From Ruditapes philippinarum (Eukaryota), in NCBI RefSeq assembly GCF_026571515.1, contig NW_026855260.1, positions 124,001-188,000 on the forward strand: a stretch of 64,000 nucleotides of DNA, written 5' to 3'. The first letter of the stretch is position 1, and the number at the start of each line of letters is the position of its first letter. Below, piece by piece: positions 29,101-51,990 of the stretch. The notes under the pieces are model-generated. The model did not search any database and was not told the DNA's origin. It saw only the letters and a list, made by a program, of their open reading frames with translations. Made by a program: the position numbers and the translations under genes.

Positions 29101-31109
29101 TGTTTTCTAAATTGAGATATTAAAATGTACCATGATTGAATATTGTAATAGAAGACAAAAAAAAAGAACACTTACAATAAAACAAACAAACACGACATAA
29201 ACATAAATTAAATATACATAGCTATATATTTATTGTCCAATTACTTTAAAAAGATTACATTCAACATGCCTTTACGACAGAGGATATGTGAAACAGCAAC
29301 ATAAAATTTTCCTTCTACAAATCTTATTATGTTCGTGCTTGTTTTAATCAATAATTGATCATTTTATGATAACCTATCGAAACTGAATTCAAACATTTCT
29401 GAAAAAGCAAAGCAACTTAAATATAAAAAAATATAATTTTCTCATTAGATATTGATTGAAACCTTGAAAGTGACCCATGTAATTTTTAAAGATTTTTAAA
29501 CACAATTTTTTATGATATTTATGACTGTATATTTAAAATGTATTCTTTATACTATTTTTTAAGTAAAACTTTGAAAGCATAGATCTTTGGAAACGTGTCT
29601 AGTCTACCTTCTATAATACGTAAATAGCATCATATAAAGTATAAGATATTCTTTCTGAAAGAATGACCGTGTAAGGGACATTTGTCTCTTTGAATATATA
29701 ACTGACCATAAAAGCCGATTATATCCGTACCGACCTATCCTATAGAGAAAATAAATTTAATATTTCCTTGCTATACGATATGCTACAATAGATAATTGGT
29801 CAGTAATGTAACGGATAATGTAATTCTCACAATACGCCCATTAGTAATATATTTGTTTAAAAGAAGCCTAATGCATCTTTTGATGATATTGATATTTTTG
29901 CTTCATCTTGGTTTCATCATAAAGGAAAAAAATGTTAATATTATTTTACAATTAAACAGGACGCAGCAAGTAAAATGAAAATAAAGTACTCTAATATCAT
30001 ACAAAGCATACAACTAATCTTGGGAAATCGTCAGCTGATCTGTTCAGTTGTATTGCAAAATTAAGTTCTCTGAAATGATTCCATGTATCCATGTACAATT
30101 AACCATTTTCAAATGTTTTCAATTTTCAATTCGAATAAAGAAATAAAAAAATGCTTCAGGGATCAAGCATCAATATATTTGAAGAAAGTCCAAATGGGAT
30201 TGCCATATGATTTCTTAACATTTAATCGAATCGGCATATACAATTTAAACTTAATGAATTTACTCTTTCAATTTCGATTTCCAATTTACGAAAATTATAT
30301 TTCAACATCATCAATTTAACTTTACGAATTCACGTTTGACATTTACATGTACTGGTTCTGGTTGCCGGTTTGAGTGACATAAAAGGTTTCAACGCTAAAA
30401 ATATTTACAATAAAAATATACAGTTTTTACTAAATGTCACTCAATCATATGTCAAATTATCTTTTGTCACTTTACTTTTGGGATAGGTTTTGTCTATTCA
30501 ATAAGTTTTTTCTTTATCATTGACTGAATGATAATGATAGGGCACAAGGGAATACGTTACCTGGAAATATTTAGAATTTGTCGCTAAAAGAAGAATTCTT
30601 GTATATTTCAAATAGTATTTTTAGAACAACAAAGGTAATCCAAATAAACATGAAATCGGCAAATCGTATGAAAGACAATATTCCTCCGTAGAGACACCTA
30701 CATCAATGTTTTGATGTAACTACATGTATTTGAATAGATGTTCAAATTTCTCCAAATGCATATAATGTCACAATATTTGCTTTCACAAGAATGATTATGT
30801 AGAAATGCTAATATGACGCAAGTTGGATAGATTTGGTTGCACTGGAACATTTAAGTTATATGTAAAATCCATCGGAACATTTTAGTATAAATGCGTAAAA
30901 TACTAAATACATGATATGGTCTTACTAATTAAATTGTATATCAATCAATGTCATTTTACGAACGATAGAAATATAATAGCCTCAAATAAAGTTTTCACAA
31001 ATAGTATGTTTGCTTTGTTGTTCTCTTTTGAGTACTCATCATGGCATTGTACTGGATAGCATTCACAGCTTTATCATATTGGCAGGAATATTTAACATAC
31101 TTCCTTCCA

Positions 31110-31270
31110 ATAGAATAGAGAAAAACAGAACCCCTTAAAAATCACGGTAAAATTTAAAATATTGCACACTCGGTGTGATTATGTTCATGGACGGACGAGA
31201 CATTTGCAAACTACCGTCTTCACTCCCTAGCACCGGTTTAATCAGAATTACACATTGTACATAGCAATCT
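31110..31270 (+). repeat. Dispersed ~160-bp repeat, copy 2 (about 2 kb upstream of gene 1 promoter)
   Basis: AATAGAGAAA..AAAATTTAAAATATTGCACACTCGGTGTGATT..ATGGACG..CCCCTAGCACCGG..CAGAAT aligns with 1480-1640 and 34690-34820. Confidence 0.7.
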
Positions 31271-33159
31271 AAATTTTGAAAAATCCGCAGCGATGTTTAT
31301 AAAAAACAACAACAAAAAACATAAAACAAACGCAATTATCACAAAAAAAATATCAAACCAAGAAGGTGTTTTATCAGAAGTTTAATAAAAATAACAAATG
31401 ATAATAACATGTTCCTGATAGGACGCTTCATCATGATTGATTTGAGTGTGTGTGTGTGTTTTCTTAACAAAACAAAAACAACAAAAATAAGATTATTTTT
31501 TTCATTTCATTTTACTTAATATGAAAATGATCAAATTCGATGTTGTATTTGATATTTTATTTAAAATTTGAATTCTATAAACACATTTCATAGACACTTA
31601 AATTTTTACAAATACATAAACAGGGAACTTGTGTTATGAAAAACAATACGTTTGACTCATAGAAAAAAACAGTGAGATGCACTACATAACTTCTCGATAT
31701 TCACAAAATGACATTTACTATTTATGTTTAACAAACAAACAAACAAACAAAGGAACTAGAAAAGGGAAAAACAAGAAGAAAACAAAAACAGGATAAAACG
31801 TTGTACGCAATACCATACCAAATGTTTAGTTACAATGCTAATTAAATTAACACATAATTTCAATTGGAAGTACATTATTAGCAGTCATGTATATTAAAGA
31901 TAAATGCGATAATAACAGTATCATCAGCAGCAGTATGAACATAATCAACAACAACAGAATTTAGCATCATAAAAACATCTGTTTAACATAATATGTGTTT
32001 TAAGTTTCTGTTGATGATTTTTTTATCTGTATCCTTAATTTAAAAGTGTAAGAGTACAACCTTCGATGTAGTGTTAAAATATTTCGGAAAATATTGCATG
32101 CTTTACACACACACACAAATAATGTAATAAGTTTATGTCAAACGTAATTACACATTTCTAAGGATACACACAATTATAAACACTAATACAAATACGGGAC
32201 ATGATGGAGAAAAGTTACATATTTAATCCAGTTTAAAATAATGTCAGACATTTTTATTTGAAGATTTATTCACAGTCTGAATCTTGAACACGGTTTTCCA
32301 TCTAACTGACAATTTGGCAACGATTCTAGATTGTGCTGTTATTGCCTTCTTTCCGTTTACTAGCCAGTCCAAACTGTTAACATGACTGTTAAACGACATT
32401 TCCACAAATAAAAGCAATTCGGGATAGCATGTCTTTTGAAAATCAATAGAAATGATTGACAAACTTAAGCCCAAATGTTTTTTCCAAACATAAGATTTTT
32501 TGTGTATGAATAAGACATGTTAGAGTTACTATAAATAGAAATAAGTCATTATCATTTACAATACTATTTTAACACGTACGACCTGTTAAGTTAAAGCAAA
32601 AGCATTCTGCTTCAAATGCAACCCAGATCCTATTATTGTAATTGATGACAATTCTAAGTGACTCACAACTAAACCGTCTGAGCGAGATATGTGTTTGTAA
32701 ATGTGCACTCAATGTTTTTTTGTTAGAAAGGTTTATGTTAATGTTTTATTATTGTTCTGTTTTTAATTGGGTGTTTTATATAATTGTCTATCATTATATT
32801 TATTTTGTATTTTATTACCTTATTTCAGTGAATTAAACATAAAACACATAGTACAATTATAGTACATATTTAAACAAAAAAAGCTTATTCGTTAGGAATC
32901 TTGATGACGCAAAATTTCTATTTTTCTCAATTTAGCATCATTTAAACCCATTGTTAGGAAAAACTGGGTAGTATAAGTACAGATAAATAAAATAGTTACA
33001 TGAATTTCAACATACAAATTATAATTATCCAATTATCTGTGTAAATATTTTCGTTCAATCATGGAGGTAAAAATCATTGCGAAATATTCTTTTTATTCCA
33101 TAGCAACATAACGTATTATGAACGTGACTATGGACTCACTCCTTAAATTTGGAGCAAGG

Positions 33160-33221
33160 TATAAATACAGATTATTTGATCGGAAACATCAGTTTAACGT
33201 ACATTTTTCCTAGTGGTAAGC
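33160..33221 (+). promoter_or_regulatory. Candidate core promoter and short non-coding exon 1 of neuropeptide gene 1
   Basis: TATAAATA at 33160-33167. Initiator TCAGTT at 33189-33194, with its A 31 nt after the first TATA T. Splice donor TG|GTAAGC with GT at 33216-17. Predicted exon 1 is 33191-33215 and the intron is 33216-36005. TGACGCAA at 32905 and TGACTCA at 32659 lie upstream. Confidence 0.6.
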
Positions 33222-34252
33222 GTTTATTGGAAAAGGTTTTACTTGAATGAGAAGACACTATGGCAGCCTAGTCTCACGGAAGCATATACATGAATTCATT
33301 TTTTAAGAGGGTACTGATATCTGATTTTGACCAACACTGACTGTGGACTTTTATCGTTTAATCAAAAGGTATTGTTACATTTATATTTCATGTCATAGAT
33401 TGTGATATAAAAATATTAATAACTACATATATTGAATAAATATATTAATACAAAATGTTTCTTTTAAAATTTATTTGCTTTTCGATATTTTTTAGCTAAG
33501 TATATTAATTCAAGTAAAACTAAAGGTTATATGATCAACAATTTTAAAGGTATCTCTGTTCTAAATAATTTAAATAAATATTTTATCAGAGTCCGTGATA
33601 TTTTAATAGAATTAATAATCTTTACAAAACTCAAAATTTATTTACACATTAATAAATGTTGTAATTTTAATATGAAAAACAAATTTCATTATGAAAGACA
33701 TATTTCCTTATGTAATGCATATTTCAGTATGTAAGGCGTATATAATTGAAAAACATTTCAGTCACCATTAATATTATCGTCCAAATTGTATTCTTGCAAA
33801 TTAAGACAAACTACATTAAAATTGTTTCAATCATCGTTTATTCTTCACATATATAACATGATTAGATTAACCGTCATAGTCTGATGTCTCTACAAAATAG
33901 TTAAGATTGAAATGGTTAGCGATACTGTACAAAATATATATAAAATAGTGATTTTATTGATAATGTTAGTTATAAAGACTGAGCTGAGATTGTTTATACA
34001 TTATATGGCTGGTCTGGCGGAAACGGCTGTTTGAAAATATAATCCGACCCGCTTATAAGCTTTCATGTAACATATCAGAAATGTTGAAAACAAATAGTAT
34101 TATAAAGTATTATATAAAAAAATAAATACAGCCACTTTATTTACGTACTGAATTGTTAACATGTCATTTTTTAAACAAAACATTATGTCTAAATAAGGAA
34201 GTATAGCTGCTTTTCGGAATTTCTATTAGCAGCACTTCCACTTACATGAGCT

Positions 34253-34260
34253 TGACGTCA
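34253..34260. promoter_or_regulatory. Perfect CRE palindrome (TGACGTCA) in the predicted intron of gene 1
   Basis: Exact motif match. CREs are common in neuropeptide genes, but an 8-mer can occur by chance (another is at ~8792). Confidence 0.25.
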
Positions 34261-34689
34261 GTATCATTCTCTTTAGCTAAAAATCTTCAATATAATGTAA
34301 GGTATTTTGAAATGCACCTTCGATTCACTAGAAGTTCATAAAGACAAAGCAAGAAATAAACTTTGCTGAATATTTTCTCTTTGCCATAAGATACTCCGTT
34401 ATGTGTCATTTAACACTACAAGTGATTCATGTTTGTTAAAACAAGACCCTTAGCTTCTGTGCGACATAATTTTTATTTTCGAATAAAGGAAAATTATGTT
34501 TTATTCTAATTACTAATTAATTAACGATACTTTCTGATATAGTGTTATCAATTATAACCATTATATAACATGACGTTACCAGCTTTTTGAGTCAGCAGTC
34601 AACAACATTTTATATGAGACATAAAAAAATACTTCAGCATGATTTACACTTACTTATCAAGAACTCTAAACTTAAAAATCTTGAAACAA

Positions 34690-34820
34690 AGTGATCCCTC
34701 GGAAGCATTAATCACAACAAAATTACATAAGAATTGCAGACTCGGTTTGATTGAGTCTGTACATGAGGGATAATGAATGAGTGCAACATCCCTCACGCCC
34801 CCCAGCACCGGCTTGAGGGG
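34690..34820 (+). repeat. Dispersed ~160-bp repeat, copy 3 (in the predicted intron of gene 1)
   Basis: TTGCAGACTCGGTTTGATTGAG..AGTGCA..CCCCCCAGCACCGG matches the copies at 1480 and 31110. Confidence 0.7.
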
Positions 34821-35216
34821 TACTTAAGTCAGATGTGTTGTCTCACTATTGAGAATAAATGTTAAACAAAGTAATAAGAGTCCAGAATAATAATCACTCA
34901 TAATCAATCAATAAAATTGAGGGGCTTAAATTTTAACACGCAGATAAAAAAGTATATTCATGCATGCGCTTATTTATTACGGTAAAATGGTAAAAACGTA
35001 TTTCATCTTAATGGCTTGAAGTTTGCAAAGCTTTTTATTTAAATAAAGTTTGGCTTGTTTACAATTTAATTCAATATATTAATAAATGAAAATCCAAGAT
35101 GTCAGTGGAAAAAAATATTTTTCTTAATGTATATCATCTATTCTGTTGCGGAAAGGACTTTTCAATATGTGATCGGATGTTCTGATTGTGAATGATAAAT
35201 TTCATTGAAAAAAAAA

Positions 35217-35220
<4 letters not shown>

Positions 35221-35264
<44 letters not shown>
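35221..35264. repeat. (CA)22 microsatellite
   Basis: Perfect dinucleotide run in the predicted intron of gene 1. Confidence 0.98.
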
Positions 35265-35268
<4 letters not shown>

Positions 35269-36010
35269 ACAAAACCATAACAAGAACAACGTTTTGTTGA
35301 AAAGCTTAGATTCAGATAAAAAATCTTGTGTGAAAAAGTTATCCAATAATGTTTAAGAATAAAAAGTCATTAAACACATGACGCTATTTGTCAAGTGCGT
35401 CTGTTTTTTGTTGTTGTGTTATAATATTTTTTTTAAGAAACTACAAAGACAATCTCTTTACATGAATATTAAATACCTCACATGATGAATGGAATAAATA
35501 TAAGTTCTACGCTTTTGTTTAAATGTTAAAATTGCTTCATTTCTCATTGAGATTAATATGTTTATCGCATACCCTTGCCGCTTTTGCGATTCCGTAAAAT
35601 CGGTATTACCAGGCCGTGTATACATTTTTATGTGACATCACACATAGCGTAAATGCGCGCTAAATGTTATCGTTTCTCTTTAGGTGTGCAGAGAAAAAGT
35701 AATTCTTTTCCCTTTAAACAGTCATTATTTTGGGTGTGCAAAAAACATAATATTATATTTGAATGTAGGTTCACTACTGAATTTATTGAATTGGTTGAAT
35801 TAAATAATATTATACTAGCCATAGGGTCGCATGCTTAAATTTTATTCAACTTTTTCAATGAATTTAGTATTGAACGAATATCTCTTTCATCTACATTGTT
35901 AATTAAGTAAATTTTGATGTGGGCATTAGTTCTCAGTGTCGCGGTTAAACACATAAATATATTTCCGGCATCAAAATTTATCAATATATATATTTTTATT
36001 TTCAGCAATT

Positions 36011-36382
36011 ATGGATTTTACATCGACATTCCTTCTCACCATCATACTTGCCTGCTCAGTTAAAGCAATCGACGAATCCGACGAAGAACATGCCTTTAGA
36101 CAAAAGCTCTTCGGGTCCTTATACAGGAATATAAGAAACAGAGAACTTTTTGAAAATCCCGAGTTGACACGCTTGCATTCATATGGAAATCTCGATTCAT
36201 CCTCGGACTTTGCTTTCCCTTCCGTGCATGAACATTTCTTTGAAGAAAACACGAAAAGGTCTCCTCTATACAGAATGAATAAGCCAATAAGCCTACGTCA
36301 GACAAGACTTGCTGCATTTGGAACAATGCTTGTTCCCAAGGTCGGGGAAAAATCCGCCCAAAAAGTCTGGCGATACGGATAA
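36011..36382 (+). CDS. Neuropeptide precursor 1 (123 aa); predicted 39-aa peptide SPLYRMNKPISLRQTRLAAFGTMLVPKVGEKSAQKVWRY-amide
   Basis: Polypyrimidine acceptor TTTTTATTTTCAG (AG at 36004-05) 5 nt before the ATG. Hydrophobic signal peptide ending VKA, acidic spacer, KR at aa 82-83, and terminal RYG-stop (Gly amide donor). Clear paralogue at 48002. AATAAA signals downstream. Confidence 0.93.
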   Translation: MDFTSTFLLTIILACSVKAIDESDEEHAFRQKLFGSLYRNIRNRELFENPELTRLHSYGNLDSSSDFAFPSVHEHFFEENTKRSPLYRMNKPISLRQTRLAAFGTMLVPKVGEKSAQKVWRYG

Positions 36383-36513
36383 AAAGATTACATGTTGACA
36401 GTTTTATTTATGGATTCATCATCTTCCATTTTCTTCACTTTTCTCAAACGCAATGCGTGACAAAGTTTAATAAATTGATACATTTTGGTAAATATGAATA
36501 TGCCCTTATGCTT

Positions 36514-36549
36514 AATAAAACAAACATCTGAGAAAACTGTCTTTGTTTT
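36514..36549 (+). terminator. Polyadenylation signal of gene 1
   Basis: AATAAA at 36514-19 with a downstream GT-rich tract TGTCTTTGTTTT (36538-49). Alternative AATAAA at 36469-74. Confidence 0.55.
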
Positions 36550-39500
36550 AGCGCTCAAAAATATTATATTTCCAGGATTAATTGCGAAGTAACATCACAT
36601 CGGCATTTTCTGTGTATTATTATAACATTTTGATCGATATATCGCTTGACTTATTGTTTATAACAATAATTACAATTTGGCATGTTTATAGGTTTCTTAT
36701 CTTTTTATTGTGAACATCAATTTTGTGAAAAAGAATTGTATGATTTATACAACCTTTGTAAAAGAACACAATTTTTGAAAGGCAAACAAATCAAATAAAT
36801 ATTTTAAACTTCATGTGGTAAATTTTATATTGTAACTGTTGTTTGTTTATTGTATAGAAAAACAAGAATCAAATTACTTACCTCTGGATGGGTTGTATTT
36901 TATACCAAAAGAGCGTTCAATGATAACGTAAGGTTCATATTTATGAAAGTATATAAACTCTTTGCAATCTTAAAGATATTTTTGTAATTGACTTCGCTCC
37001 GTGCATCACCAATTTATATAACAATATTGACTGAACAAATGCCTTAATAGTTTTAATTTTCAATTTTGAACCCATTGTTAGTAAGTGTTGCAAATAGTAT
37101 GTTTCCCGAAACATCAAGTCCTTGAATTGCCATAGCAAAACGTATTTAAAATATACACTAGATGTCAAAGTTTTTATTTCTTAAAATGACGTTTTTCTCG
37201 TAATACTTTACAAGTTTATATTTAGTTATGATTCGATGTTTTAAACATCTACGTGTGTCAAACTATTGAAAGTGAATTTTATAAACATACTCATCGTCTA
37301 CATATAAATAAGTTGAGAAAAAAAAACAATATAAGGTTAGATGTTCGACACTCATTATAATTCAGAGTAAGATGTTTAATACCTCTTATATTTTCGAAAT
37401 ATGTTTATAATATAAACATGCATAAAGGATATTTAAGAAAACCATTTATCATTCAGTATATTAAATGTAATATAGTACTTAAGTAGTTCGGTTGAAATGA
37501 TATTATTTTCAATTCATGTAGCGGTGATGTCGCAGTAAACTAGTGGGGGGGGGGGGTAGTACATCAACATATCTTGACTTTCCAACTAGACTGGTTGAGG
37601 ATTATCCCAAGTTCCGCTCTGTGCCTGTGCATGATTTCGAGCACAAACGGGTTTTCAGTGGGAAATGACACCAATGGTTTATACATACAAATAGTTTGAA
37701 ATATTGTCGATAAGAACATAAAAGGTTATTAAATTTTAAATTTTTTAAACATTTATCCATTTATTTTGGATAACTTTCGAATGTGACATAGATGAAGGGA
37801 GAAGACTATGATTATCGTCATTGAATTATATAAAGACAAAAGACATTTAAATAGAGAGTTATGAATTTCTCTCTTTAGCAAATTTCCCAACTTTTGTCGA
37901 ACTGAAATTAAGTATATTGATATAAATATATTTATGATCTTCATTTTTTTTATATTTTGTAATTACATCCAGTTTTTCGTTTGTTAAGTTGTTTGTTTTG
38001 CGCCGATTGCATAAATATTCGGTCAATTTTCGGCGACCGTTTCGCCTTACTGGCTATCAGGATAAATAACTATAACTTCTTCTCTGCAATTGACTGACTA
38101 CAATTTCAAAGTTATATCTGAGTCTGCGATGATTGACAAATGACAAATAGATGTCCGGGACTAATATTTCACGGACAGTAATCGTGTTGTAGTATGTAAC
38201 AGTATGCGAGACAAGGTACCAAACCGTTGTTTCAAAATATATCAAAAGAAAGTTTTCAGTATTAGAGACTTACTTGCACTCTTACTTGTTGACGTAAAGT
38301 GAGCTCAAATAATCAATAAAGACAACTAACGTCTTCTAATATTATTTTGTTAGGAATTGCATTTCATTTTCGCAAAAGAAAAATTGTCTGTATCCTTCAT
38401 ATTTTTGATTTATAAATTCATGAGATGATATTGAATTGATTGGTGATAAAACATTTTTGTGAAATATAGTATTATTGTGAAATTATTTTCTTTGTTGTTT
38501 TGTTATTTGTTTTATTTCTTTTTTTTATATGATTTAAAGGACCAACCTATTTTCCTCGCTTATGTATACAGGTTTCAGGCTTGCAATAAATCCACCAAAA
38601 ATCTAGGTACGCACGTGGATTATGATATTATTTTGGCAAAATGAATAGCAACGTAAGGCGATACATATTATTTAATATGACTAAACAAGGCTACTGTCTT
38701 GTTTAATACAAATTGTAAAATTGTATTAAAATAGTATATTATGAAAATAATGGACTGGCAATTTTCTACAATCAACTTTTAAAAAGTTTTGTTTTGTGTT
38801 TCGACAAATTCATGTTAGCTCCAATTCTATAATGACATCAAGATTTGCCAGGTGACACACATGCATACGCATACTTATTTTGAGCTTAAAATTAATTATA
38901 ACTTTCAGATACAATAATATTGTATAAAACCAATCAAGAACTTATATCATCATTTTTTATATAATATCGTCAATACTGAACTATTTGTTGTACCTGGCCA
39001 GATGAAAAGAACCGATGATAGATATAATCAACTGCCAAGTGTCATAATTAATAAAGGATTATCTGCAAAATGTTATCATATACATTTTCTTGAACAATTT
39101 TTAAATGACAAATTTTCTTTTGTAAGCCTTTTGCTTATTTAATTTACAGAAAAATGTATACGCATTTTTTCTCATTTAGGTCTCTGCCAGAACGCAATAG
39201 ATTATCAGATAAAATAAAACAACAACGCTGTATTCTCATAGCGATAGATCTGTTACGATTTTAAAAAATAACCATTCATTGTAACATCCCAGATAAATTC
39301 GTTATGTTGTTTCTGAGGGATTACGGGTATCAATACTGGTCCCCGACGCTTGATGACGTAGTTATAAAGTGGAAAATATTATAAAATTAATCTTAAATAG
39401 TGAAGCGTGGTCCCGTCGTCCAGTCTGGTGAAAATAATTAGTGTTTAAATTTTTTTGTCCAATAGGATTGCAGTATTTCAAATGAATGGTAACACATTTA

Positions 39501-39671
39501 CTTTGGTAAATCGGTCTAGAAAATCGACAGTTTGTAAAAATAATTTAAAACACTACGCCGTTTAATATTCATCAGTATGTATTTGGAGAATAAAATTGGT
39601 CGCACGGCTTGTAAATACGTAGTAATACACTTTTACCTTCACAGGGAGAAATCGGGCGAAAGGTGACGAAT

Positions 39672-40549
39672 GAAAATATCATAGGTTTATTTTTAAGCGC
39701 TTTTAAGATTTCTTAATTCAAAACATATATTCCTCAAAGAAGTTATTTAACTTTTATTTACCGTTTGATGACAAGGCATCAGGCTTGCGAAGTCGCCCAA
39801 AGCCCATGAATGCCACTCATTATTTTATATTTATATTACGAAATATTTACACAGAATAATTTTAGCCACAATGAAATAAAACAAAGCTGTTAATGTCCCG
39901 TTAAATGAAAAAAGAAAAGCTACGCTGGAGATAATTGAAAAAGCGTGTAGCTTCCATTCGTTATGTATTTGATTGAAATTATATTGCGTATATATTATTA
40001 CTTTTTTTTAAAAATAAAATATTGTTAAACGTAATAAGAAATTTCTCTACCATTTAAATGTTGGTTATTGCTATAAGAGAACCGTTTATCTTTTCTTGTT
40101 TTGGTGTACTTTATTTCAAATCACATCTGATATTATTGAGTATTAAGGCATCTGTTAATTATAAGTCGATAAAAATGGGTTTTATCCATATGATTCTTGA
40201 TTTGAATGAAACAAAACAAGCATGTAACTATGTACGATTAAGTTTGCCCAAATTCATTTATAAAAAAATAGAAATTTAAACAGAAACAATTCACTTATTA
40301 ATTGTAAATGTAATTCACAACTCACTGTTAACTTTTCTTTATTAAACTTGAAATTCTCACTTGCAAGAACATTAATCATTTAAATATAATAATAAAGAAA
40401 TACAGGACAAGGAAACTAAACTAAAGAAAATTCGTGCGAAATATGACAGATGAAAATACCAAAGGTTTATATTTTAGCGCTTTGAAGATTTCTTAATTCA
40501 GAAAATATATTCCTCGGAGATATCTTTTAACTTTTATTAACCGTTTGAC
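39672..40549 (+). repeat. Pair of ~100-bp direct repeats (39672-39771 and 40452-40549) between the two genes
   Basis: GAAAATA.CA.AGGTTTAT.TTT.AGCGCTTT.AAGATTTCTTAATTCA..ATATATTCCTC..TTTAACTTTTATT.ACCGTTTGA is shared. Confidence 0.85.
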
Positions 40550-41484
40550 GAATTTATCCATCAACATTATTAAGGTAATGATAAAAAAAAATATTCGTTC
40601 ACACAAACAAACTCATACGTAAAATTGTATTGATTCACATCGTTTGATCTTTATTTATTGATAAACACTCTCTCTGAGAATTTACCGTTTAATATGTGCA
40701 GGGTAAAATTAGAACAAACAAAAACGCACCTCTTCAACTTAATAAGCAGTAAAATAGTTCAATATATAAATGAATGATATGTAAAGCCATTTTAGAGAGC
40801 ATTAATTTTGAACATGTATCTAGAATTATTGACACGTTGATTCATCATTGTCCAAAGATGTTATATCTTAATTGCTTCTTTGCGTTTTTTTATCTTCTTA
40901 AAACGATAAAAACTAAACAATTAACATGTTTTACATTGTGGTTATGCAAAAACATCATTTAAAATAATCGTTTATATCACATCTATATACAACCAAGACT
41001 GCATAAAAAGTTATAGGAGGATTTAAATAATTAACGCCGTACTACAATATTTCTACGAGCCTGTTGTTTGTTATCTTTTTTGAAAATATTGTACATTCTA
41101 TTGAAGTCATCGTGCTGTTACGATTCAGTCGATTCGTTTCCTTCTACCTCTTTTTCAAGTGATGCGTTATTTGAGTAGGCGGTAGGAGGTATGGCTTGAC
41201 CTGCTAGTCTCCTTACCCAATACGCCTTTACGTTTGTAGACCTTCTAATTAATCATTTCTTTAATTCATTGTTGGTCTCTATTATTTCCAATTATATTTT
41301 ATTATAGTAATCACTCCGTCCTTGCGGTTGTTTAGTGCCATGTCCTGTTTTTTCTTTTTATAGATTGCAGCTACCACTACCTTATGTCATTAAACTAACT
41401 CAATCAGACCGAATGCTTAAGGCTTTCTTTTTTGACTGTTTGAGTTCTTACCATCTGAAATTAATCAATCAATGGAATATATTA

Positions 41485-41520
41485 GAATGAATGAATGAAT
41501 GAATGAATGAATGAATGAAT
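41485..41520. repeat. (GAAT)9 microsatellite
   Basis: Perfect tetranucleotide run inside a low-complexity ATTA/AATC tract. Confidence 0.97.
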
Positions 41521-43980
41521 GATTAATTAACAAGCAAACAAACAAATTACCAAATAAATATATCAATTAATAAATCAAGTTATTAATTAATGTATTAATT
41601 AATGTATATATTAATCAATTAAAACTAAAAGCAGGAATTAGTTGATAGAAATAAAATAAAACATAAACAAGATTTGATAATGAATTTATGTTTGATTGAA
41701 AAATTGAGAAAAACACATAAGCAGAGGTTACACCGATTGTAAAAGATCGGTTTAGTTTATAGATTGTCACGTATAAAACCGTTTGAAATTTTTATAAATG
41801 CTTTAATGAAGTGAAAAAAATAGTTTAAAGACATTCGTCGATTACTACAGTCGTTAAAATTCATTATAGAAATAAAAACACTTTGATTGTATGAAAAAAA
41901 AATGCTTAAGGGTTTATGACCAAATAGAATATTTGTCCATTGGGGTAACATTAATAGCATTCAATGTTTCAATGTCTCTTACAAGAAAGTAAAAATACTT
42001 AAGTTTCATCTTTGATTTGATTATCAAAAGCAAATATTAAACGAATTTCTCTCGAGATTAAACTATTCAAAAAGTAACAATTAAAATTCAGATTTATCTT
42101 TAAAGAAATGATTAAAAAAGGATTTGTTTTCCATCAGAGAATTTTTTTTAAAGGTTATATATGATATTGTAATATTCTACACAAAGTGACTTTCTCATTT
42201 ACTTATATATTTCAAGGTAGAATAGCTCTCATGATTCGTTTAGTACAATTGTCAATATCATTTTAACTTTGCCCTTTGTTAAGTAAACATTTCGATTTTT
42301 CTTAATAATAATAGACCAATTTTCGTAAAGTATTTTGTAAAGCATCGTTGGTGTCATTTGCACGACTATGCATAGTTTTCAAAACATTGAAATCATCACC
42401 ATTTGTCTTGTCCACTTTATGTGAACATCAATGTAGTAAATCTGCAAAGTCCAAACAACAAAACACATCTGATATTATGTAAGGGTAAACGTTTAAATTA
42501 ATTTTAAGTCCTATCTTTCATTTTTCGTTGAAACATTTTTACAGTTGTTAAACCGTTCGAAAGTTTAGTTTTTAAGCCTGGTTTCTGGCGAGAACTCAAT
42601 AGTATGACTGGCACACGTTTTTTTGTATTTTTTAAGTTTTTAATCAAATTGATTATCCGTAAAATTATGTGTGTGTGTCAATATAATTATACATTGTGTA
42701 TTTATTTGCTATATTGCCGTTTAAATGAATTGTCATTTCCACAAATATAAATATGACTGAACATTATTTCGAATAAAGAAAGTAGATATGAAATCCGTAT
42801 ATGTTGTGCTGATAGTCAGCTCTCAGTCACTATTGTTGTGAATTCGCACACAACAATAAAGAGCAGAAATATAAATATCTATATCACATTTAATACACAA
42901 CATTATATTGGTGCATCTGTTTATTGCATATATCTGGAAATTGTATTTTGCTTAATTCACATGGCCGTGCAAAATAATATAATACTATATAGTTGAAATT
43001 TCACAGTAAAGGTGCCATTCGGACATTTAACTCATAAAACCACGGACATGTCACCACCGAAATGATAAGGCGCAATATGCTGATGACACTGATAATGTTT
43101 CCAATTATTTTAAAACGGTCAACTCGAGGTTTTGGAGCATGTAAGATGACTATTACATGAAAAGGTAGCTTCATGTTAATGTAAACAGTTAAGTATTTTG
43201 ACTTCCATACAAAATACTATATCAATAGAACTTACTAATTACTGAAGAGCCACACAAGCAAACTATGGTTCAGGGAAAAAACACTTGGAAAATAAAATTA
43301 AAACATTTCTGGGCCTTTCATTAAATTGCAATTCTTTCATCAATTATCCTTTGCTCTCATTGGCCTGTGATACACAAAGTTCGATGCAAGGTAAATAAGC
43401 AGCTAGTATATTTTTTAATGTTTACACCATTTGCATATTAAGAAAAGCTCACGGTTTAGAAAGTTTCAAGTTTATCAGAACGGTAAAGTAATATATTTGC
43501 CCCCCCCCCCCAACAAAGATTTCAGCTATTGAATCAAATTCAACCAACTATTTTCAGAAAAGAAATGATGAGCCTCAGGGATAACGTGTGTGAATATTTA
43601 TAAAACTTAAAAGCAGGAGCGACTCCAAACACTTTGTTAAACATTTCCCCGCCAATTTACAGGCAATTTTATAAACAATAGGCTTAGCTCAATGTAAAAT
43701 TTATGTAAGAACACAGAAAATGAGCATACAACTGTATGCATTATCAAAGACTTCAAACACATTTTATTTATTTATATAATTATTGTGATATCTAGAACCT
43801 GGTGATTGACATACTTTCAAATTACACATATGGGGATCTACATGCCACGGGCACTGTGTCAAAATGTTGTTCATCTGCAAAAATAAGTGAATGCCTAGAA
43901 TACTTTTGTTGTTTGATGTAAAGACATCAATTTGTAAAAAAAAAATATTTCAGAAAGTTGATGTCAATATTGAAATTTAA

Positions 43981-44280
43981 CCCTTTCGCTGCCAGAGGGT
44001 TATTGTTTTATTGATCATCTATTTGCCAGAAGGTTTTCTAATATATTATTTATTAATATAATTATTATTATTTGTTATATATATGTTTCCAAATCTGTGA
44101 GTATAATAATCATTATTGTCGATGGTATAATTTTCTGTATATTGGTTATTATTTTTATTATTATCATTATTAATTTATTATTATTACTATTTTTATTATA
44201 GAAACGGTTAAAGCCGTCCATAAGGCAAAAACGCCGAAAATAAAAGGGACAGCATAAGCCGTCCTTATTGCAGTGAAAGG
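43981..44280. mobile_element. piggyBac-type MITE (300 bp)
   Basis: TTAA|CCCTTTCGCTGC ... GCAGTGAAAGG|TTAA: TTAA TSD (43977-80, 44281-84) and CCC-initial short TIRs, with an AT-rich non-coding interior. Confidence 0.8.
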
Positions 44281-44565
44281 TTAATATTCCATACTATTTG
44301 ACAACTATATTTGATACAATTAATGATAGCGCAATATTTACCCGTTATACACGATAGAACCACCATGTTATTGAATAGCAATTAAAGGTAATACAAGCAG
44401 TTCTCTGTCGCAGCCACGATAAAAAAGAGATGTGTCGCTAACCAAATGCTTCTGAGAATTAACCACAATACAGTCAAAATCTGATACACTTTAAAGGCAT
44501 ATTTTCTAAGGCGTAAACGAAACCATGATTAAATTTAATTGAAAATGCAAAAAAAGGTTTATGTG

Positions 44566-44778
44566 TATATAAAGGAGTATCAGGACAGAAACGTCGCAGT
44601 AAAATCTTCACCTGTTCCAACAAAGCATCATATATTGGAAAAAAGAACAGCATTTGAAAAGGAGAAATGTTTCCAGTATAAGCAATATATATGAATTGAT
44701 GAATGAGCACATTGCTTCTGGCTTTCTGTAGGAACTATCATAATAATTTATCAATTAGCTGCGGACTTACAGGTAACA
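44566..44778 (+). promoter_or_regulatory. Candidate core promoter and non-coding exon 1 of neuropeptide gene 2
   Basis: TATATAAAG at 44566. Inr-like GCAGT with A at 44598 (30-32 nt downstream). Donor CAG|GTAACA with GT at 44773-74. The predicted intron 44773-47994 (3.2 kb) is similar in size to that of gene 1 (2.8 kb). The exon would contain short upstream ATGs, so this call is less certain. Confidence 0.4.
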
Positions 44779-44809
44779 TTTAAGTTATTTATTAAAGGGC
44801 AATATAAAA

Positions 44810-45175
44810 GTATCATAAATTAATTGGAGTTTTGATTAATTAATTATTTTACTTGGATATATATTTTCATGAACTGCACTTGATCAATTGTATTCTAAAC
44901 TGTCATTTTTAGTAGTTACTTTGATAATGCGCTATTTTTAAAAGGCGATGAAAAAGGGCATGCTAAATTAACTGGATTTTTGTTCGATTATTTATTTAAG
45001 TTAAATTGTTATTATGTACTGTAAAAAGTTATTATGAACTGTACTTGTTTAATTGTATTCTGAATTGTCACTTTATGTTTTTCTTTGATACCGCGCTATT
45101 TTTAACGCGCAAAACGTATCATACATTAATTGGAGTTTTAATTTAACTATTTTACTTGAATATTTTTTAAATGAC
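44810..45175 (+). repeat. Local diverged direct duplication
   Basis: ATGAACTG.ACTTG...AATTGTATTCT.AA.TGTCA...CTTTGATA..GCGCTATTTTTAA occurs at ~44869 and ~45034. TATCATA.ATTAATTGGAGTTTT.ATT occurs at ~44811 and ~45117. Confidence 0.75.
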
Positions 45176-48001
45176 AGTGTCTTAATTCATGTCGGATAAT
45201 TTTGTTAGGTCTAAACTTTAATTTCAAAACAATGAATGAACAAGTCGTTCATAAATAAGCAAATTTAAATCATTTTAAGTGTTTATTTTTTATTATGATA
45301 AATAAATAATTATAGTAACTGGTTTAAATGAAAATGAACGAAACAGTTGTTTAAAATTCGAGGTTAAAGAGCTTATCTTGAAAAATAATGACTAACATAA
45401 TCTTTGCAAGTCTTGATTATATAAACTGAATAAAAAATTATAAAAAAAAACTTTATTTGTTTTATAAAAATTCTTTAATTCATCATTTTTCAAATTATTT
45501 TATAAATTAAGAAAGGGATTTCTTACATATTTTAGTAGGAACATAAATATTACAAGTGTTTATCCTATGATTTGTATGAATTTAATGAATGTTTTGGTAA
45601 AAATGTGTACATTGTCAATATACGCCATTTAAGACAAAACAGATAACATAATCATTTATGTATCAAGTCCCAATTGAAGTAAAGAAAGAAACATCAGCAA
45701 AGATAAACAATTTAAAGCTTAATTATCTACGTTGTAAGAAGATAATGTTTGTTTAAGATTCAACGATTAAGTTTGATTAAGATTTTATTCCTATTTTGCA
45801 ACACTTTTAAATTATTAAAGGATTCGAAAATGGATCTTTATAAATATTTAAACCAATAAAAAAGCTGCTTCTGCATTTCCCATTTCCCCATAAAAGCGTT
45901 AAACACTATAACAGCTCCAATTTTATGCGTTTAACACTTATTTCACTTTTTGTAATTTATCTTAGAGTTTTTGTGAAATGAATTTGTGTTCAAATAGATT
46001 CTAAAGAGATTGTTTATTCATCGTGTAATGAATTGTTTTATACATAAAACATTCCCTTTGTTACGGGATTCATTTATCACTGTGTAAATCCGCTACATTC
46101 ATTTAATATATTTATTAACTGTTATTTTCATCTTGCGGAGGTTTAACTTTAAACAATACTGTTTAAGCTATTCAGAAACATTTTCATGATATTATACAAC
46201 ATTTTCTAACGGAATAAATCACGTACACTTGTAACCGATTTGTTTCTAAGTAGTGGAACTTGAAATGCGTATATCGGTGTTTTGAAATGTATTATAATTG
46301 CTGTTATTATACTAGTAATTTTATACACTCAAATCTTTAAAATAAGTTAATGTTAATAAAATACCTTAGACTGGACTTTAAACATTTAACTAAAGAAAGT
46401 ACTATACTAAAAAACTTAGAAAAAAAAGAAGAAAAAATAAATTGTGGATCGTCAAAATTTTTGTTTGGACAGACACTGTCAATGTCAACAAAACCATTTT
46501 TAAAATTATGCAGCAAATAATTTGAAAATTATTTTAAAGTTTTGTATATACATAAATGACACTAATACCGTAAGCGATTTCATTATTGAATTTAGATTAA
46601 AGGCAAACTGAGTCATATACACAAATATAATTATAATCTTGTTTTTTTTCATATTTTTATTTTAATGTTCTGTTACAGTTAGAAAATTTTCACAATGTCT
46701 TTGTGTTTTTAGGATTTATGCATGTTTGTTTTTTGGCAATAAGAACGGGTTTAATAATGATAATAGAATTATTCTTCTCGAAATATACATATGTACTTTG
46801 CTACCATGTTGCTACCCTTACCAATTAGTTCACATTTAGCGATTTTTTATTGAGGCGATAAGCACGTCACATGTTCTAGTCAAATATTAAATTGCTATTA
46901 AACACACGTTTGCCCTTTCCACAGAAAGGAAAACAAAAACATTTCTGGGGTAATATATTCAGCTTTTCTTTGTTTATTTAATTTTGCACATGTTTATTGC
47001 TTTTGAAAACAATTTACTTTATCCCCATTGTATATATTCCATAGATCTCAATAGACAGACATTTAGTGAATTGGAAACCGGCGGAACTATTACTTTCATC
47101 TTGCAAATGTTCTTTCTTTGTATTCAATATCTATAAACCTATTTGATTTATCATCATACGAAATGATATATTGTTTTAATTTATCATGTCTCAGGGTATT
47201 AAATTATACATGAAATCAGTATATCGAACATAAAGATTAAACTTTTCAAATTGATAGACACTATTATAATGAACACCATGCTAGACAGTCATCAGATTTT
47301 AAATCACTGGAGACGAAACCTAATATGAAGCCTTTTTAGAATACCTTTCTTGATAGGAAAAAAATGAAATCTACTCAAAATATTACGAAAACAAAATATA
47401 AATATTTGAAATCCTTTAAATAAGACATTGAGTCAACAGAAAACAATTTTATTGTAATATTGCCAGCAAATATGTCACACTAACAGCACGCTTTATTACC
47501 ACAAGAAGATACTTATTTTTTAGTGTAATACGTCTCTTCTGATAAACGAACCAATAATTCCCAAGGTCTTTAATACGTTAAATATTGATGTTCAAACCAC
47601 GATCTAATAAAATAGGGTGTTGTTGTAAGCGTAAGATGCATGATATGACACGACATTATAACGTGTTACAATTTAAAGCAAAATATTTTATGTAATAATT
47701 TATTTATAATGAATTTCCATTCATAACCACTTAGTCAACCTCAATTTCTTCAATATTTTTTAAAGGATAACCAATCGTTAAATAAAACTATTTTATTGTT
47801 TGTACCAAACATTGTAATGCCTAATGGGAATGCGTCCATGTGCTAAAAAAACAATCTAATATTATATCAATATATTTTATTATATTATTTATTCAAGGAT
47901 TATTATGTGTTGTCATTTTCTTTCCATCTCTGTGTTAAGTTTAATCGTGTATTTGCATCACTTTATCATGATAAGTGCCTTTTTTATCTTACAGGACTGA
48001 T

Positions 48002-48370
48002 ATGTCTCATACAGTGTTACTTGTGCTAAGTATCTTTTTGACGAGTTCGGTCGTCGCATTTCAAGAAATTGAGGAAAATGATGCCTTTCGACACGAACTT
48101 TTGGAATCTATTCTAGACAAACTGCAAGATAAACATGATAATGACGACACCTACCCAAGCCCATTTTCATTCGAAAATCTGAATTCGTTTTTTAGCAATG
48201 TTTATCCATTACGCGAAGGATTTGGTGATGATAAGAATAAAAGGTCTCATCTATACAGAATATATAATCCAATCAGAAACCGCGAGACAAGACCTGCCCA
48301 ATTCGGCAGCACAATGAATCGTCCTAAACAAGAGGAAAAGATATTTTCAAAGTTGCTCAGATATGGATAA
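48002..48370 (+). CDS. Neuropeptide precursor 2 (122 aa); predicted 40-aa peptide SHLYRIYNPIRNRETRPAQFGSTMNRPKQEEKIFSKLLRY-amide
   Basis: Acceptor TTTTTTATCTTACAG (AG at 47993-94) 7 nt before ATG 48002. The GTG start at 47975 in the ORF track lies in the intron. Signal peptide ending VVA, acidic spacer, KR, terminal RYG-stop. About 37% identical to precursor 1 by hand alignment. Confidence 0.93.
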   Translation: MSHTVLLVLSIFLTSSVVAFQEIEENDAFRHELLESILDKLQDKHDNDDTYPSPFSFENLNSFFSNVYPLREGFGDDKNKRSHLYRIYNPIRNRETRPAQFGSTMNRPKQEEKIFSKLLRYG

Positions 48371-48505
48371 AAATGAACTGGAACGCAAACAATGTGTAAA
48401 TGTAAAGAAATGAAATATATGTGATAGTACTTTATTTTTAATAAAAAAAATTGTAATATTGGCTACAGTTCCATCTTTCAATTACATGCTGTCAAATATC
48501 TTACC

Positions 48506-48511
48506 AATAAA
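48506..48511 (+). terminator. Polyadenylation signal of gene 2
   Basis: AATAAA 136 nt after the stop (132 nt in gene 1). Alternative AATAAA at 48440-45. Confidence 0.5.
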
Positions 48512-48838
48512 TACATGTTTTCACAACAAAAAATAATGCAGTGAATAGCATTATGTCTTTTCTTGGCAATTCTCTGAATTAATGTTTTATATAAATTTAT
48601 GGCAAATTAGAATGAAAAAAATGGCATTTATCTGATAAGTTGTCTATGTGAAAAATATGTCTGTTTTCTTATCGATATATGCTTATATGTTTTGTTCTAT
48701 AAAATGTATAAAAGAAATGGCAACAGTCGTAAACTTCTTTTTATATAATTCCCAAAAACAAAATGAAAGTGTGTTCAATTGACAAGGTACTCAAATGTTT
48801 CTTTCAGCGACACTATGCCCATCCAAATGTTAATGGTA

Positions 48839-49056
48839 GACCGCCTCCGTGGTCGAGGGGTTAGAGTCGATGACTTCTAATCCAGTTACCTCTCTGACGT
48901 GGGTTCGATCCCCGGGAGATGCTTTGGTAGTTTAGCGCGGAGGAAGGTAGTCTTGTACTGGTATAACTCTCCAGGAACGATGGTTAGGAAACTACCCGCC
49001 TATATGACTGAAATACTGTTGAAAAAAGGCGTAAAATGAAACAAACAAACAAACAA
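48839..49056 (+). mobile_element. Full-length tRNA-derived SINE (Meta-domain type)
   Basis: Pol III A box TGGTCGAGGGG (48850-60) and B box GGTTCGATCCC (48902-12). Central GTACTGGT..CCAGGAA..TGGTTAGG. 3' part ATGACTGAAATACTGTTGAAAAAAGGCGTAAAA with an (AAAC)n tail. Perfect 14-bp TSD AAATGTTAATGGTA (48825-38, 49057-70). Confidence 0.93.
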
Positions 49057-49659
49057 AAATGTTAATGGTAAGTTTACATGCAAGTACTAGTAAAAATAAG
49101 TACACTGCCTTTTATATTGCCTCTAAGTTATCATTTTACATTAGTGTCTCTGTCAACATTCTCCAAATATGCGGTATATACATTTGTGGTTATTTTAAGC
49201 ACCTCTAATATCTTATCTTAATCATGTGTCATTATCTATTATTTGGTCGACCACCATCATAGCCCAGGCCTCAAATTCATAACCCATCATGTGTCCCATC
49301 ATAACCCCAATATCCTTATAATTGTAATAACCGATTGTCACTAAACAACTACTAATCTAATCTGTTTTCATGAGTCATCGAACCTTTGCTTTTATTATTT
49401 TCATTTTGCCTCATGTTTTTCCCCAAGACCTCTGATATTGAGAAGAAAACAATATTCAAATCGAGAAAAGCGGTACTCATTTATTTACTTCAGTTTACAA
49501 TTTAATGTATAGTCTCTAAGAATTTATATGCAACAATGATTTTTGAGTTCTGTAATGCATATTTTATAAAGTTGAAAACATACATTAATAAAAGTGTTCA
49601 ATTCAACACCAAACCAACTATACTTACGTTGTTTAATTTAATTTTAACATGAACTGCAC

Positions 49660-51990
49660 GATTTTATAGCTTACAAACGCAATTATGTTTCCATTTGTAT
49701 TCTTCAAAACTGATTAAAGAGATTCAAAATAACCAAATGACAATGTCTTTATACATGAAAATGAAATTGATTATATATTTATTTCTTGACAATCCCTCGG
49801 TTTCATTTTATTTCTTATCGAATCAATTCTATAAACGGAAAGCTAGATATCGGTTGCATAAAGAAAAGTGATGTAAATAAATAGTCAATGACATTATTTT
49901 AAACAATACGTTTACTTATTAAAGTTTTTTCTATGAGAGGAATAAAATAACAAAAAGTGACAATGTAAATGATGCCGTTACCAGTTTCCCCTTTAATTAT
50001 TATGTGTATCACGAAATAGTTCCTAAGTGATCAGTATGTATTAGAATAAATTGAAATGTATGTAATTTAAGACCAGTCTATATTGGTTAATTTATTAATT
50101 AATTAAATATATAAATAAATAATAAATAAACAAACAAATAAATATATAAAATATTGCCGAAGTACAATAAGTCAGGTTACGGCACATCCCGTTTACACAT
50201 AAATATTTAAGGTCAGATGCATCACTTGATTCTCCATGAAGATACAAAATATTAAAATATTGAGGCAATGAAAATTCAACTCTTTTCTCTAAAAAGCATT
50301 CTCTTGGCGATTTAATGTTAATAATCACGTTCAAATTTCTATAAAAATAGTTTGCAATGGCAATATGTCCCTTTGCCTACACCAGGTGGTCAGCAAATTG
50401 AAGGGGTGTTTAACCTATTATTTGTAGGTACTACTAGCATTTTTACAAAACAAAGTACTGCTTATGCCAAACAATAACAACACTATGTTACCAAAGGGAA
50501 AACAAACAATAACTCAGCCTTCTGAGAAGTGAATACAAGTTTTCACTATTTTAGTTTTTATTTCTGAATTTTCATTTTCAATTAATTGCGTGATTGTTTA
50601 AAAATCACCCTATGTATACATCTGCGGATGTTCCTTAATTCATATACACGTCTAACAAAACTATATTATTATCCAAATTTAGGAAAGTCAAATAAAAATT
50701 TAAAACGATTTAACAGCAAAGTTTAATAGATATTCATTCCCTATTAAAAGGGGATTGGTCTATAACGAATGCATTTTTAAGAAATGTTTTAAGTATATAT
50801 TGATTAACGGTGAAAATGTATCGTTTAGATATATTACTACAATTATTTGTCTTGGCAAAAGTGGTAATATAGTTCTTTGTATCCGTGTTGTAATATTGTT
50901 CTGCTTCGAAATCATTGATTCCAGCTCTCTAAATGTTAACAAATGAGTACTGCCTGTCGGTGTTAGGCCATGAGGAATAATGCATTAATTTTAATCCCTC
51001 ATGAACAGACTCATTTATACCGAGTTCATAGTTGTCATGTAATTTTGATATAATTATTGCTTTCGAGAGTTCACCCTTTTTCCATGTGTTTTTACTTTTA
51101 TACTTGTACTTTGTTATTGTTGTTTATTTTATATCATTTTCCCTGTAATTGCCGGAATTTTATTTAAGTGATACAGATGTATTAGTAGTCACGTGTAATA
51201 TAGTCGTATTCTCATAATTATATTATTTAATATACTATGAAACAGAAAAGTGTTTCGTAAGCTAAAAGTGAATTTAACAATTTAGTTTATTGACCTTGCT
51301 TTTCTCAAATTGCACTTTAAAACGCTGCTTTTATTTAAAGAAGTCATTTAATACAAATAAAAAAGGCACAGAATTTATAAGAATGTATCAGAAATCATAT
51401 ATAGACCCAAAGGCGGAATGAAAGTTGTTTTGTATTTTAGAATTTTGTAAAGGAGTCGTTACAGCGAAAAGAAAAAGATCATAACCCAAGACATGAAAAT
51501 GTCCCCTTGTTATCACAAGACTCAGAGACAAGCGCCCGGTGCAATTAAACCAAAATTTTATGCTTACTTTTAAAAGACATTCTTTGATTATGCTTATGCT
51601 TTAATTCTATCTACTTTTTAGTCATTCACCTACTACTTGAAATAAACGAACATTTGTAACCATAAAATAATAGGATATATTGTATAGATTATTTAAACTA
51701 CTGGGAATTAAATACACTAAAAGATAAGTACAGAGATAGTGAACTAAGCGATTAAAGATGTGTTTGACGCAGTAATTGAAATGAAAATCACTAGGGAAAA
51801 AAATACAGTAGATCTCCTTTTGAAGACAATAGGCATCAAAAACATTTCAAGCAATGTAAATTGTTATCAATGATGTACAATTTTGTTTTAAGAACAGAAA
51901 GGGCAAGTATATATGCATTTCTGAATAATATAATATCAACATAATTTTGTAATGTCAAGTTTGATCTAAGATTTGTACAATTTCTTTAAA
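49660..51990 (+). repeat. Downstream segmental duplication, copy A
   Basis: 49660-50560 matches 54440-55380 (TCAAAACTGATTAA; TCTTGACAATCCCTCGGTT; CCTTCTGAGAAG). 51600-51990 matches 56410-56800 (TGAAATAAACGAACATTTGT; TTTCAAGCAATGTAAATTGTTATC). Offset about 4.8 kb. Confidence 0.9.

Follow-up and report, generated by a model that had tools for sequence, protein, structure and literature searches.

In a 64,000-nucleotide (nt) stretch of the genome of the bivalve Ruditapes philippinarum (contig NW_026855260.1, positions 124,001 to 188,000; hereafter, the window), two genes on the same strand, gene 1 and gene 2, each encode a predicted precursor of a single long, basic peptide ending in Arg-Tyr-Gly. 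We conclude that the two genes are very likely paralogues, arranged in tandem, of a precursor gene of the neuropeptide KY (NKY) type. While the NKY family is known, the pair would add to it a third lineage in bivalves that is unannotated and tandemly duplicated with diverged C-terminal ends. The survey in which two NKY subgroups were defined (PMC6425005) does not set this lineage apart in its text.

Two precursors with a shared prohormone architecture

Both precursors consist of a hydrophobic leader closing with V-x-Ala at residue 19, a spacer of 60-62 amino acids, a single Lys-Arg, the peptide, a Gly and the stop codon (Table 1). The spacers have a net charge of -7/-8, and the peptides of about +7 (gene 1) and +6 (gene 2). 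For gene 2, the program listing open reading frames (ORFs) starts at GTG 47975, and we took the ATG at 48002 as the start. The two precursors are 38% identical over 128 columns (BLASTP, E = 4e-19); Lys-Arg, peptide and Gly together are identical in 24/43 columns and the preceding part in 22/83 columns. A preliminary description of this DNA had proposed two same-strand genes with a shared prohormone architecture, about 37% overall identity and a higher likeness of the mature peptides, and the present analysis agrees on all three points.

The window has a G+C content of ~28% and stop codons are, therefore, dense. Only three ORFs of at least 110 amino acids are present in the six frames of the 64-kb window, two of which are genes 1 and 2; because of this low number and the conserved orthologues described below, a chance origin of the two ORFs is excluded. 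At the DNA level, the blastn match between the genes is limited to 72 nt of the peptide-coding part (76%), and the same comparison of the gene 1 region with the gene 2 region found no common promoter or exon 1. Because the DNA match survives over just these 72 nt, the tandem duplication is old. In its own genome (1.41 Gb), this lineage has only two copies, both in the window.

Two features of the spacers were observed in addition. Following the signal peptide, an acidic stretch and then F/L-R/K-x-x-L-L-x-x-L are common to the family and lack flanking basic cleavage sites; this stretch may serve the sorting or the folding of the propeptide. Moreover, residues 50-68 of gene 1 (36158-36214) contain a weak echo of the peptide core, i.e. 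P-E-L-T-R-L-H-S-Y-G-N-L compared with P-I-Q-T-R-I-A-S-F-G-S-K (BLASTP, E = 0.049 in one comparison), which may have remained from a second copy of the peptide or be a chance likeness.

The peptide is the conserved part of the precursor

Gene 1 has three orthologues (P0001-P0003) with 95, 72 and 54% identity, while a single orthologue of gene 2 was found (P0004, 94% identity). Between gene 1 and P0001-P0003, the peptide part is 81-100% identical and the rest 40-93%; for P0003, the respective counts are 34/42 and 33/83 (Fisher p = 1e-5). Similarly, gene 2 and P0004 are identical at 42/43 positions of the peptide part. Peptide precursors usually show this pattern, i.e. a peptide part that is much better kept than the rest.

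A family profile was built from six sequences and searched against 1.84 billion proteins, giving 16 matches at E <= 1e-3. Apart from the seed orthologues, 13 matches were read, each of which has the same architecture (leader, spacer, K-K or K-R, peptide) and ends with R-Y-G. The family peptide reads approximately S-x-L-Y-R/G-x-N-R-P-I/M-x-x-R-Q/H-T-R-L-A-x-F-G-S/T-M/I-L-x-P...R-Y-G-stop. The named relatives come from the bivalves and are annotated as hypothetical proteins: Sinanodonta woodiana, Dreissena polymorpha, Potamilus streckersoni and Mactra antiquata. R-Y-G is invariant in 18/18 aligned family members, as are a Lys, F-G and a Pro, and gene 2 retains every one of these residues (Lys, F-G, Pro, R-Y-G). 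The dibasic site with the following residue is K-R-S in the pair and K-K-S or K-K-A in most relatives. In a maximum-likelihood tree of 21 family members, the backbone was not resolved and the duplication could not be dated; the gene 2 branch has a length of 1.27 changes per column. Pfam gave nothing meaningful for both precursors. Finally, a protein language-model search (ESM Atlas) placed gene 1 near neuropeptide precursors generally (DH31, PDH, CCK, NPFF and QRFP; values of 0.87-0.92), which we consider a soft lead.

The pair is probably related to NKY precursors

The NKY peptide of Platynereis contains ...P-L-P-V-E-T-R-L-A-S-F-G-S... and ends with M-R-Y-amide (PMC6389622). The family profile aligned with the Platynereis dumerilii NKY-1 peptide with an hhalign probability of 95.3% (E = 2.4e-8) over 34 columns at 41% identity, and several family members have the exact T-R-L-A-S-F-G run of this peptide. 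A published collection of precursors (PMC8557429, supplement 27) has an NKY block, in which nemertean and Capitella sequences have the same core. The same block includes Solemya velum 35353, Laevipilina hyalina 80564, Gadila tolmiei 70139 and Lottia gigantea Lotgi1173017; these four mollusc sequences read ...I-P-I-Q-T-R-L/I/F-A-S/A-F-G-x-K-L-V/M-P...L-R-Y-G and are of the same subtype as the pair (PMC8557429). From the dibasic site to the Gly, gene 1 and the Solemya velum peptide are identical at 19/44 positions (43%; BLASTP, E = 5e-7). The Solemya and Platynereis peptides were taken from PMC8557429 supplement 27 and PMC6389622, respectively; the other NKY sequences of the supplement were compared by eye only.

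The precursor position, the peptide length and the uninterrupted coding layout are alike in the pair and in accepted NKY precursors. Both precursors have the signal peptide, spacer, dibasic site and single long C-terminal peptide (about 35-45 amino acids) of this family, and both end with x-R-Y-Gly, from which an amide would be formed; homology across the peptide to accepted members was obtained with the family profile and with gene 1.

The preliminary description had instead suggested an uncharacterised, orphan peptide system. The hhalign match to Platynereis NKY-1 and the end-to-end match to the NKY-block sequence of Solemya contradict this suggestion; moreover, as the BLASTP and profile comparisons led to NKY and an NKY-activated receptor has been reported in Platynereis (although this pairing is disputed), the claim of novelty for the system falls by the condition that the description itself had set. 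Membership in an orphan 'LRYamide' family had also been considered; no such family was found in the two bivalve neuropeptide surveys consulted (oyster and scallop), and their supplements list just the FWQP-type NKY and not the lineage of the pair. Searches of the full-text literature with the core strings (RLAAFG and variants) and the name 'NKY-3' gave nothing relevant. By contrast, the separation of the pair from NPY/NPF and from luqin was correct in light of the C-terminal motif, the copy number and the length.

Three probable NKY-type loci in one genome

The two described NKY subgroups have the motifs FW[RQ]P[LM]G[YG] (NKY-1) and G[YF]WIWMPAQG (NKY-2) (PMC6425005). We searched degenerate DNA patterns for both motifs in the genome of R. 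philippinarum and obtained one match each, both in an uninterrupted frame (Table 1). The FWQPLGY-type precursor is ~80% identical, by eye, to the Ruditapes decussatus sequence of PMC8557429 supplement 27. With hhalign, the family profile reached a probability of 7% over 9 C-terminal residues of the FWQPLGY-type NKY and of 35% over 17 C-terminal residues of NKY-2. The species would accordingly possess three NKY-type loci, with the tandem pair representing a third molluscan NKY lineage.

Lottia and Gadila have both the FW/FF-x-P-L-G type and the T-R-L/F-A-x-F-G type, and the chiton, aplacophoran, annelid and nemertean sequences have both motifs in one peptide (PMC8557429). This distribution across lophotrochozoans suggests a duplication followed by complementary retention. 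The third lineage would have retained the ancestral core P-I-x-x-Q-T-R-L-A-x-F-G...L-V-P of annelid and nemertean NKY-1 and lost the FW[RQ]P motif, and this N-terminal motif would have been retained by a separate gene of the same genome. As a tentative extension that we regard as possible rather than probable, conchiferans may have three old NKY lineages: an ancestral NKY-1 with an FWRP start and an ETRLSSFG core would have given rise to copies that kept complementary halves, and the core lineage, as the closer counterpart of annelid NKY-1, would have been duplicated into VWRY-amide and LLRY-amide ligands with an own receptor distinct from the sNPF type and, perhaps, with R-x-T-R processing into two peptides.

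According to the literature, the physiological receptor and the function of NKY are still open in lophotrochozoans. With a core closer to annelid NKY-1, the third lineage could provide better ligands for receptor deorphanisation. Moreover, the annotation of genomes could be corrected for relatives carried as hypothetical proteins, and the tandem pair would represent a small natural experiment in ligand divergence rather than a new kind of signalling system.

Objections and alternative explanations

Several points weigh against the assignment to NKY. As already noted in the preliminary description, the pair lacks the FWxPLG core by which most molluscan NKY is recognised; both subgroup motifs are absent from the pair, which has L-Y-R-M/I-x-x-P at that place. 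Because several NKY-block sequences lack the motifs too, their absence excludes the pair from the named subgroups but not from the family. The K that gave NKY its name is the Lys at the N terminus of the mature peptide (PMC6425005), while the peptides of the pair would start with Ser after cleavage; in the published NKY block, the dibasic site has a K-K-x layout in sequences from Solemya, Lineus and phoronids (PMC8557429). Compared with the two canonical NKY precursors of the same genome, just the last 9-17 residues align and, thus, the link to NKY rests on intermediate sequences. The Platynereis receptor is perhaps not the physiological NKY receptor. Moreover, expression of gene 2 is a prediction from the sequence, and this gene has one orthologue. 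Finally, the NKY assignment of both genes is drawn from sequence comparison.

Among the alternatives, it is unlikely that gene 1 alone is functional while gene 2, a duplicate that is silent or in decay, still has an open frame by chance. The RNA evidence covers gene 1 only, gene 2 combines a single orthologue with a long branch (1.27 changes per column), and it has a Pro in place of the Leu after a conserved Arg as well as an extra Ser, all of which would fit decay. However, two species (94% identity overall; 42/43 identical positions in the peptide part) share the intact frame of gene 2, and all family-invariant residues are retained; given the old duplication, an unconstrained frame in DNA of 28% G+C would have closed. 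We consider it improbable that the pair forms an orphan family without a relation to NKY, in which a long Arg-Tyr-amide peptide arose by convergence. While the missing Pfam match, the absence of both subgroup motifs, the hhalign alignments restricted to the tail of NKY-1 and NKY-2 of the same genome, and the annotation of the named bivalve relatives as hypothetical proteins are compatible with such a family, convergence does not readily account for an hhalign probability of 95% over 34 columns of Platynereis NKY-1 together with an exact T-R-L-A-S-F-G in several members, nor for a Solemya match that spans the whole peptide, including the S-P-x-L-Y-R start and the L-V-P middle. The precursor position, length and single-exon coding layout are also those of NKY.

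Many antimicrobial peptide precursors have an anionic propiece that neutralises a basic C-terminal peptide. The charges of the peptides (+7/+6) and the spacers (-7/-8) would suit a secreted cationic host-defence peptide rather than a neuropeptide, and the RNA data sets are of coded tissue. Nevertheless, this explanation is very improbable: unlike fast-evolving defence peptides, the peptide shows strong conservation between bivalve orders and has a counterpart in annelid NKY, its C-terminal R-Y-Gly is invariant, and the copy number is low (two in 1.4 Gb). Membership in the NPY/NPF family proper is hardly tenable, even though a peptide of ~40 amino acids with a C-terminal Arg-Tyr-amide would be in keeping with it and NKY has been described in the literature as an NPY paralogue. 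Instead of R-x-R-F/Y-amide, the pair ends with K-V-W-R-Y-Gly and K-L-L-R-Y-Gly, i.e. there is no Arg at position -4, and the RPRF- or RPRY-amide with which published bivalve NPF/NPY peptides end is missing. Moreover, each peptide has three scattered Pro residues and no proline-rich N terminus, the precursors stop at the Gly without an extension past the amidation site, and the peptide end is not interrupted by an intron. In total, a tandem pair of NKY-type genes remains by a clear measure of plausibility the reading that we favour.

Predicted processing and receptor

In established prohormone biochemistry, a signal peptidase removes the leader, a convertase cuts at the dibasic site and a terminal Gly is converted to an amide. 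Following this scheme, the prepropeptide would enter the secretory pathway via the 19-amino-acid signal peptide and be cut after Ala19, a prohormone convertase would cut after the single Lys-Arg, and peptidylglycine alpha-amidating monooxygenase would consume the C-terminal Gly. The expected products are one basic peptide of 39 amino acids (...VWRY-amide, gene 1) or 40 amino acids (...LLRY-amide, gene 2), with predicted monoisotopic masses in the amidated form of 4518.50 Da and 4935.63 Da, respectively.

Among the NKY fragments identified by mass spectrometry in Lineus, there are ends directly before and starts directly after the Arg equivalent to that of an Arg-x-Thr-Arg in the pair. In the alignment of 18 sequences, both Arg columns of this motif reach a conservation of at least 90%. 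A second cut at this site may give a C-terminal amidated peptide of 23 amino acids from gene 1 (the shorter form, 2577.43 Da) together with an N-terminal part of 1802.98 Da. The residue following Arg-x-Thr-Arg is Leu in gene 1 and Pro in gene 2. Because a Pro after Arg usually hinders cleavage, the second cut is less expected in gene 2.

The peptides would act on a rhodopsin-type G-protein-coupled receptor, and the sole candidate so far is the Platynereis NKY/sNPF-type receptor. This orthologue of sNPF receptors is activated by NKY with half-maximal effective concentrations (EC50) of 120-420 nM; two groups suspect cross-talk rather than true pairing.

Transcription and splicing

Public read data from four data sets were mapped to 30900-36700; two of these, X1 and X2, were presumed to be RNA, and the tissues are coded. 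A 919-nt X1 contig aligned to 33213-33366 and then to 36004-36700, and the joint has GT..AG ends after a shift by 2 (33368|36006). Because this contig is spliced, X1 contains RNA. We conclude that gene 1 is expressed and spliced. With the two exons joined, the ATG is preceded by an in-frame TAA at a distance of 15 nt, and 36011 is, therefore, the start. The candidate core promoter box TATAAATA is located ~46 nt before the position at which the transcript contig begins. The whole coding sequence of gene 1 is in the last exon, and the same is predicted for gene 2. Of the two splice acceptors of the preliminary description, that of gene 1 was confirmed in use, while that of gene 2 is a candidate.

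AATAAA is present 132 nt (36514-36519, gene 1) and 136 nt (48506-48511, gene 2) after the stop codons, as described earlier (about 135 nt). However, the X1 and X2 contigs, which both cover 36004-36700, extend 67 and 77 nt past the mapped region; both, therefore, pass 36514-36519 and reach about 36770, and the next AATAAA is at 36794-36799. The AATAAA at 36514-36519 is, thus, not the sole polyadenylation signal, if it is used at all.

In the X2 contig, the gene 1 coding exon is preceded, directly at the acceptor, by a 144-nt piece that differs from exon 1 and does not occur in the window. This piece has at least five dispersed matches in the genome (G000:C14745 L005:1501-1530, C15392, C1982 L007, C2485 and C14805), and a canonical AG|GTAAC donor follows it in both copies that were read (L005 and L007). 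A repeat may have supplied this piece as an alternative first exon (from an upstream copy that is polymorphic or unassembled), or the piece may result from trans-splicing.

The gene 1 intron contains a dispersed repeat (34586-34973, core about 34693-34824) that each of the four data sets covers at a very high depth, X21 with thousands of reads. Most reads continue into sequence that does not resemble the surroundings of the repeat, and many joints connect opposite strands; the repeat is probably an abundant element resembling a short interspersed element (SINE) or a miniature inverted-repeat transposable element (MITE) that is present in many transcripts. Rfam gave no match in 30000-50000, which includes this repeat. 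At 31094-31287, X21 RNA reads join about 31135 to 34734 with ~32 other letters in between and non-canonical ends, which is probably repeat-to-repeat mapping and not a real intron. A sigma-70 promoter scan upstream of gene 2 was uninformative, the model being bacterial. Elsewhere in the window, the third long ORF (60521-60868, plus strand; 115 amino acids, TTG start) is retroelement-like by eye, unrelated to the pair and without a Pfam match, and a run of 202 N at 24887-25088 is an assembly gap or a masked stretch.

Table 1. Features of the two genes in the window and the canonical NKY genes of the same genome (aa, amino acids; UTR, untranslated region)
Feature	Position	Strand	Remarks
Gene 1 candidate core promoter box TATAAATA	33160-33167	+	sequence reading; putative function
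Gene 1 exon 1, non-coding 5' leader	33213-33368	+	X1 contig; true 5' end possibly slightly upstream
Gene 1 intron, 2637 nt, GT..AG	33369-36005	+	X1 contig joint
Gene 1 acceptor AG after pyrimidine tract	36004-36005	+	use shown by X1 contig
Gene 1 exon 2: 5-nt leader, whole coding sequence, 3' UTR	36006-36770	+	X1 and X2 contigs, reaching about 36767-36777
Gene 1 coding sequence	36011-36382	+	123 aa + stop; ORF list and sequence reading
Gene 1 signal peptide	36011-36067	+	predicted; 19-aa hydrophobic leader
Gene 1 acidic spacer	36068-36253	+	
Gene 1 Lys-Arg	36254-36259	+	
Gene 1 39-aa peptide, SPLYR...VWRY	36260-36376	+	
Gene 1 Arg-Gln-Thr-Arg before L-A-A-F-G	36299-36310	+	possible extra convertase site; putative use
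Gene 1 amide-donor Gly	36377-36379	+	predicted amidation
Gene 2 predicted splice acceptor, pyrimidine tract + AG	47980-47994 (AG 47993-47994)	+	predicted from sequence
Gene 2 coding sequence	48002-48370	+	122 aa + stop from ATG at 48002
Gene 2 signal peptide	48002-48058	+	predicted
Gene 2 acidic spacer	48059-48238	+	
Gene 2 Lys-Arg	48239-48244	+	
Gene 2 40-aa peptide, SHLYR...LLRY	48245-48364	+	
Gene 2 Gly	48365-48367	+	predicted amidation
Shared acidic stretch + F/L-R/K-x-x-L-L-x-x-L	36068-36130 and 48059-48120	+	alignment columns about 63-90
FWQPLGY-type NKY, 138 aa	G000:C5191:307056-307076 (L004:1426-1842)	minus	motif match, uninterrupted frame
NKY-2, WIWMPAQG type, 112 aa	G000:C9265:85072-85094 (L003:1264-1602)		motif match, uninterrupted frame

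Comparison with known systems

The pair resembles NPY/NPF in the length class and the aromatic end, presumed to be amidated, after Arg, but lacks the RxRF/Y motif, the polyproline segment and the C-terminal flanking peptide. The sNPF/LFRFamide type, which has several copies of 5-10 amino acids that end with L-x-R-F/Y/W-amide and have basic sites on both sides, was excluded by the one dibasic site and the one long peptide; luqin/RYamide was rejected on the C-terminal motif, copy number and length.

The FWQPLGY-type NKY of the same genome is similar to the pair in the coding sequence in one piece, the signal peptide, the long spacer, the dibasic site, the peptide of ~40 amino acids and the end with F/L-R-Y-Gly-stop; by contrast, it has its own FWQPLGY start and a Gly/Ser-rich middle without the T-R-L-A-x-F-G core. 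Similarly, NKY-2 has the same precursor layout and L-R-Y-Gly-stop, while its N-terminal and central sequences are different; the oyster NKY-2-type peptide ends with LLRY-amide, as would that of gene 2.

Annelid and nemertean NKY-1 (Platynereis, Capitella and Lineus) share with the pair the single long C-terminal peptide behind a dibasic site as well as the core P-L/I-x-x-E/Q-T-R-L-A/S-S/A-F-G-S/T, which is followed by a variable stretch and x-R-Y-Gly. However, NKY-1 starts with K-x-F-W-x-P-M-G and the pair with S-x-L-Y-R-x-N-K/R-P, the NKY-1 precursors often end with G-R-R or G-K while the pair ends at Gly, and the bivalve core has an Arg at P4 of the T-R site. Finally, the Solemya sequence has an S-P-W-L-Y-R start and an L-V-P in the middle, both of which lie within its match with gene 1. 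The Solemya, Laevipilina, Gadila and Lottia sequences are single survey transcripts that were not discussed as a separate lineage, whereas the pair consists of two tandem copies that have diverged and differ in the C-terminal tetrapeptide (VWRY in gene 1, LLRY in gene 2).

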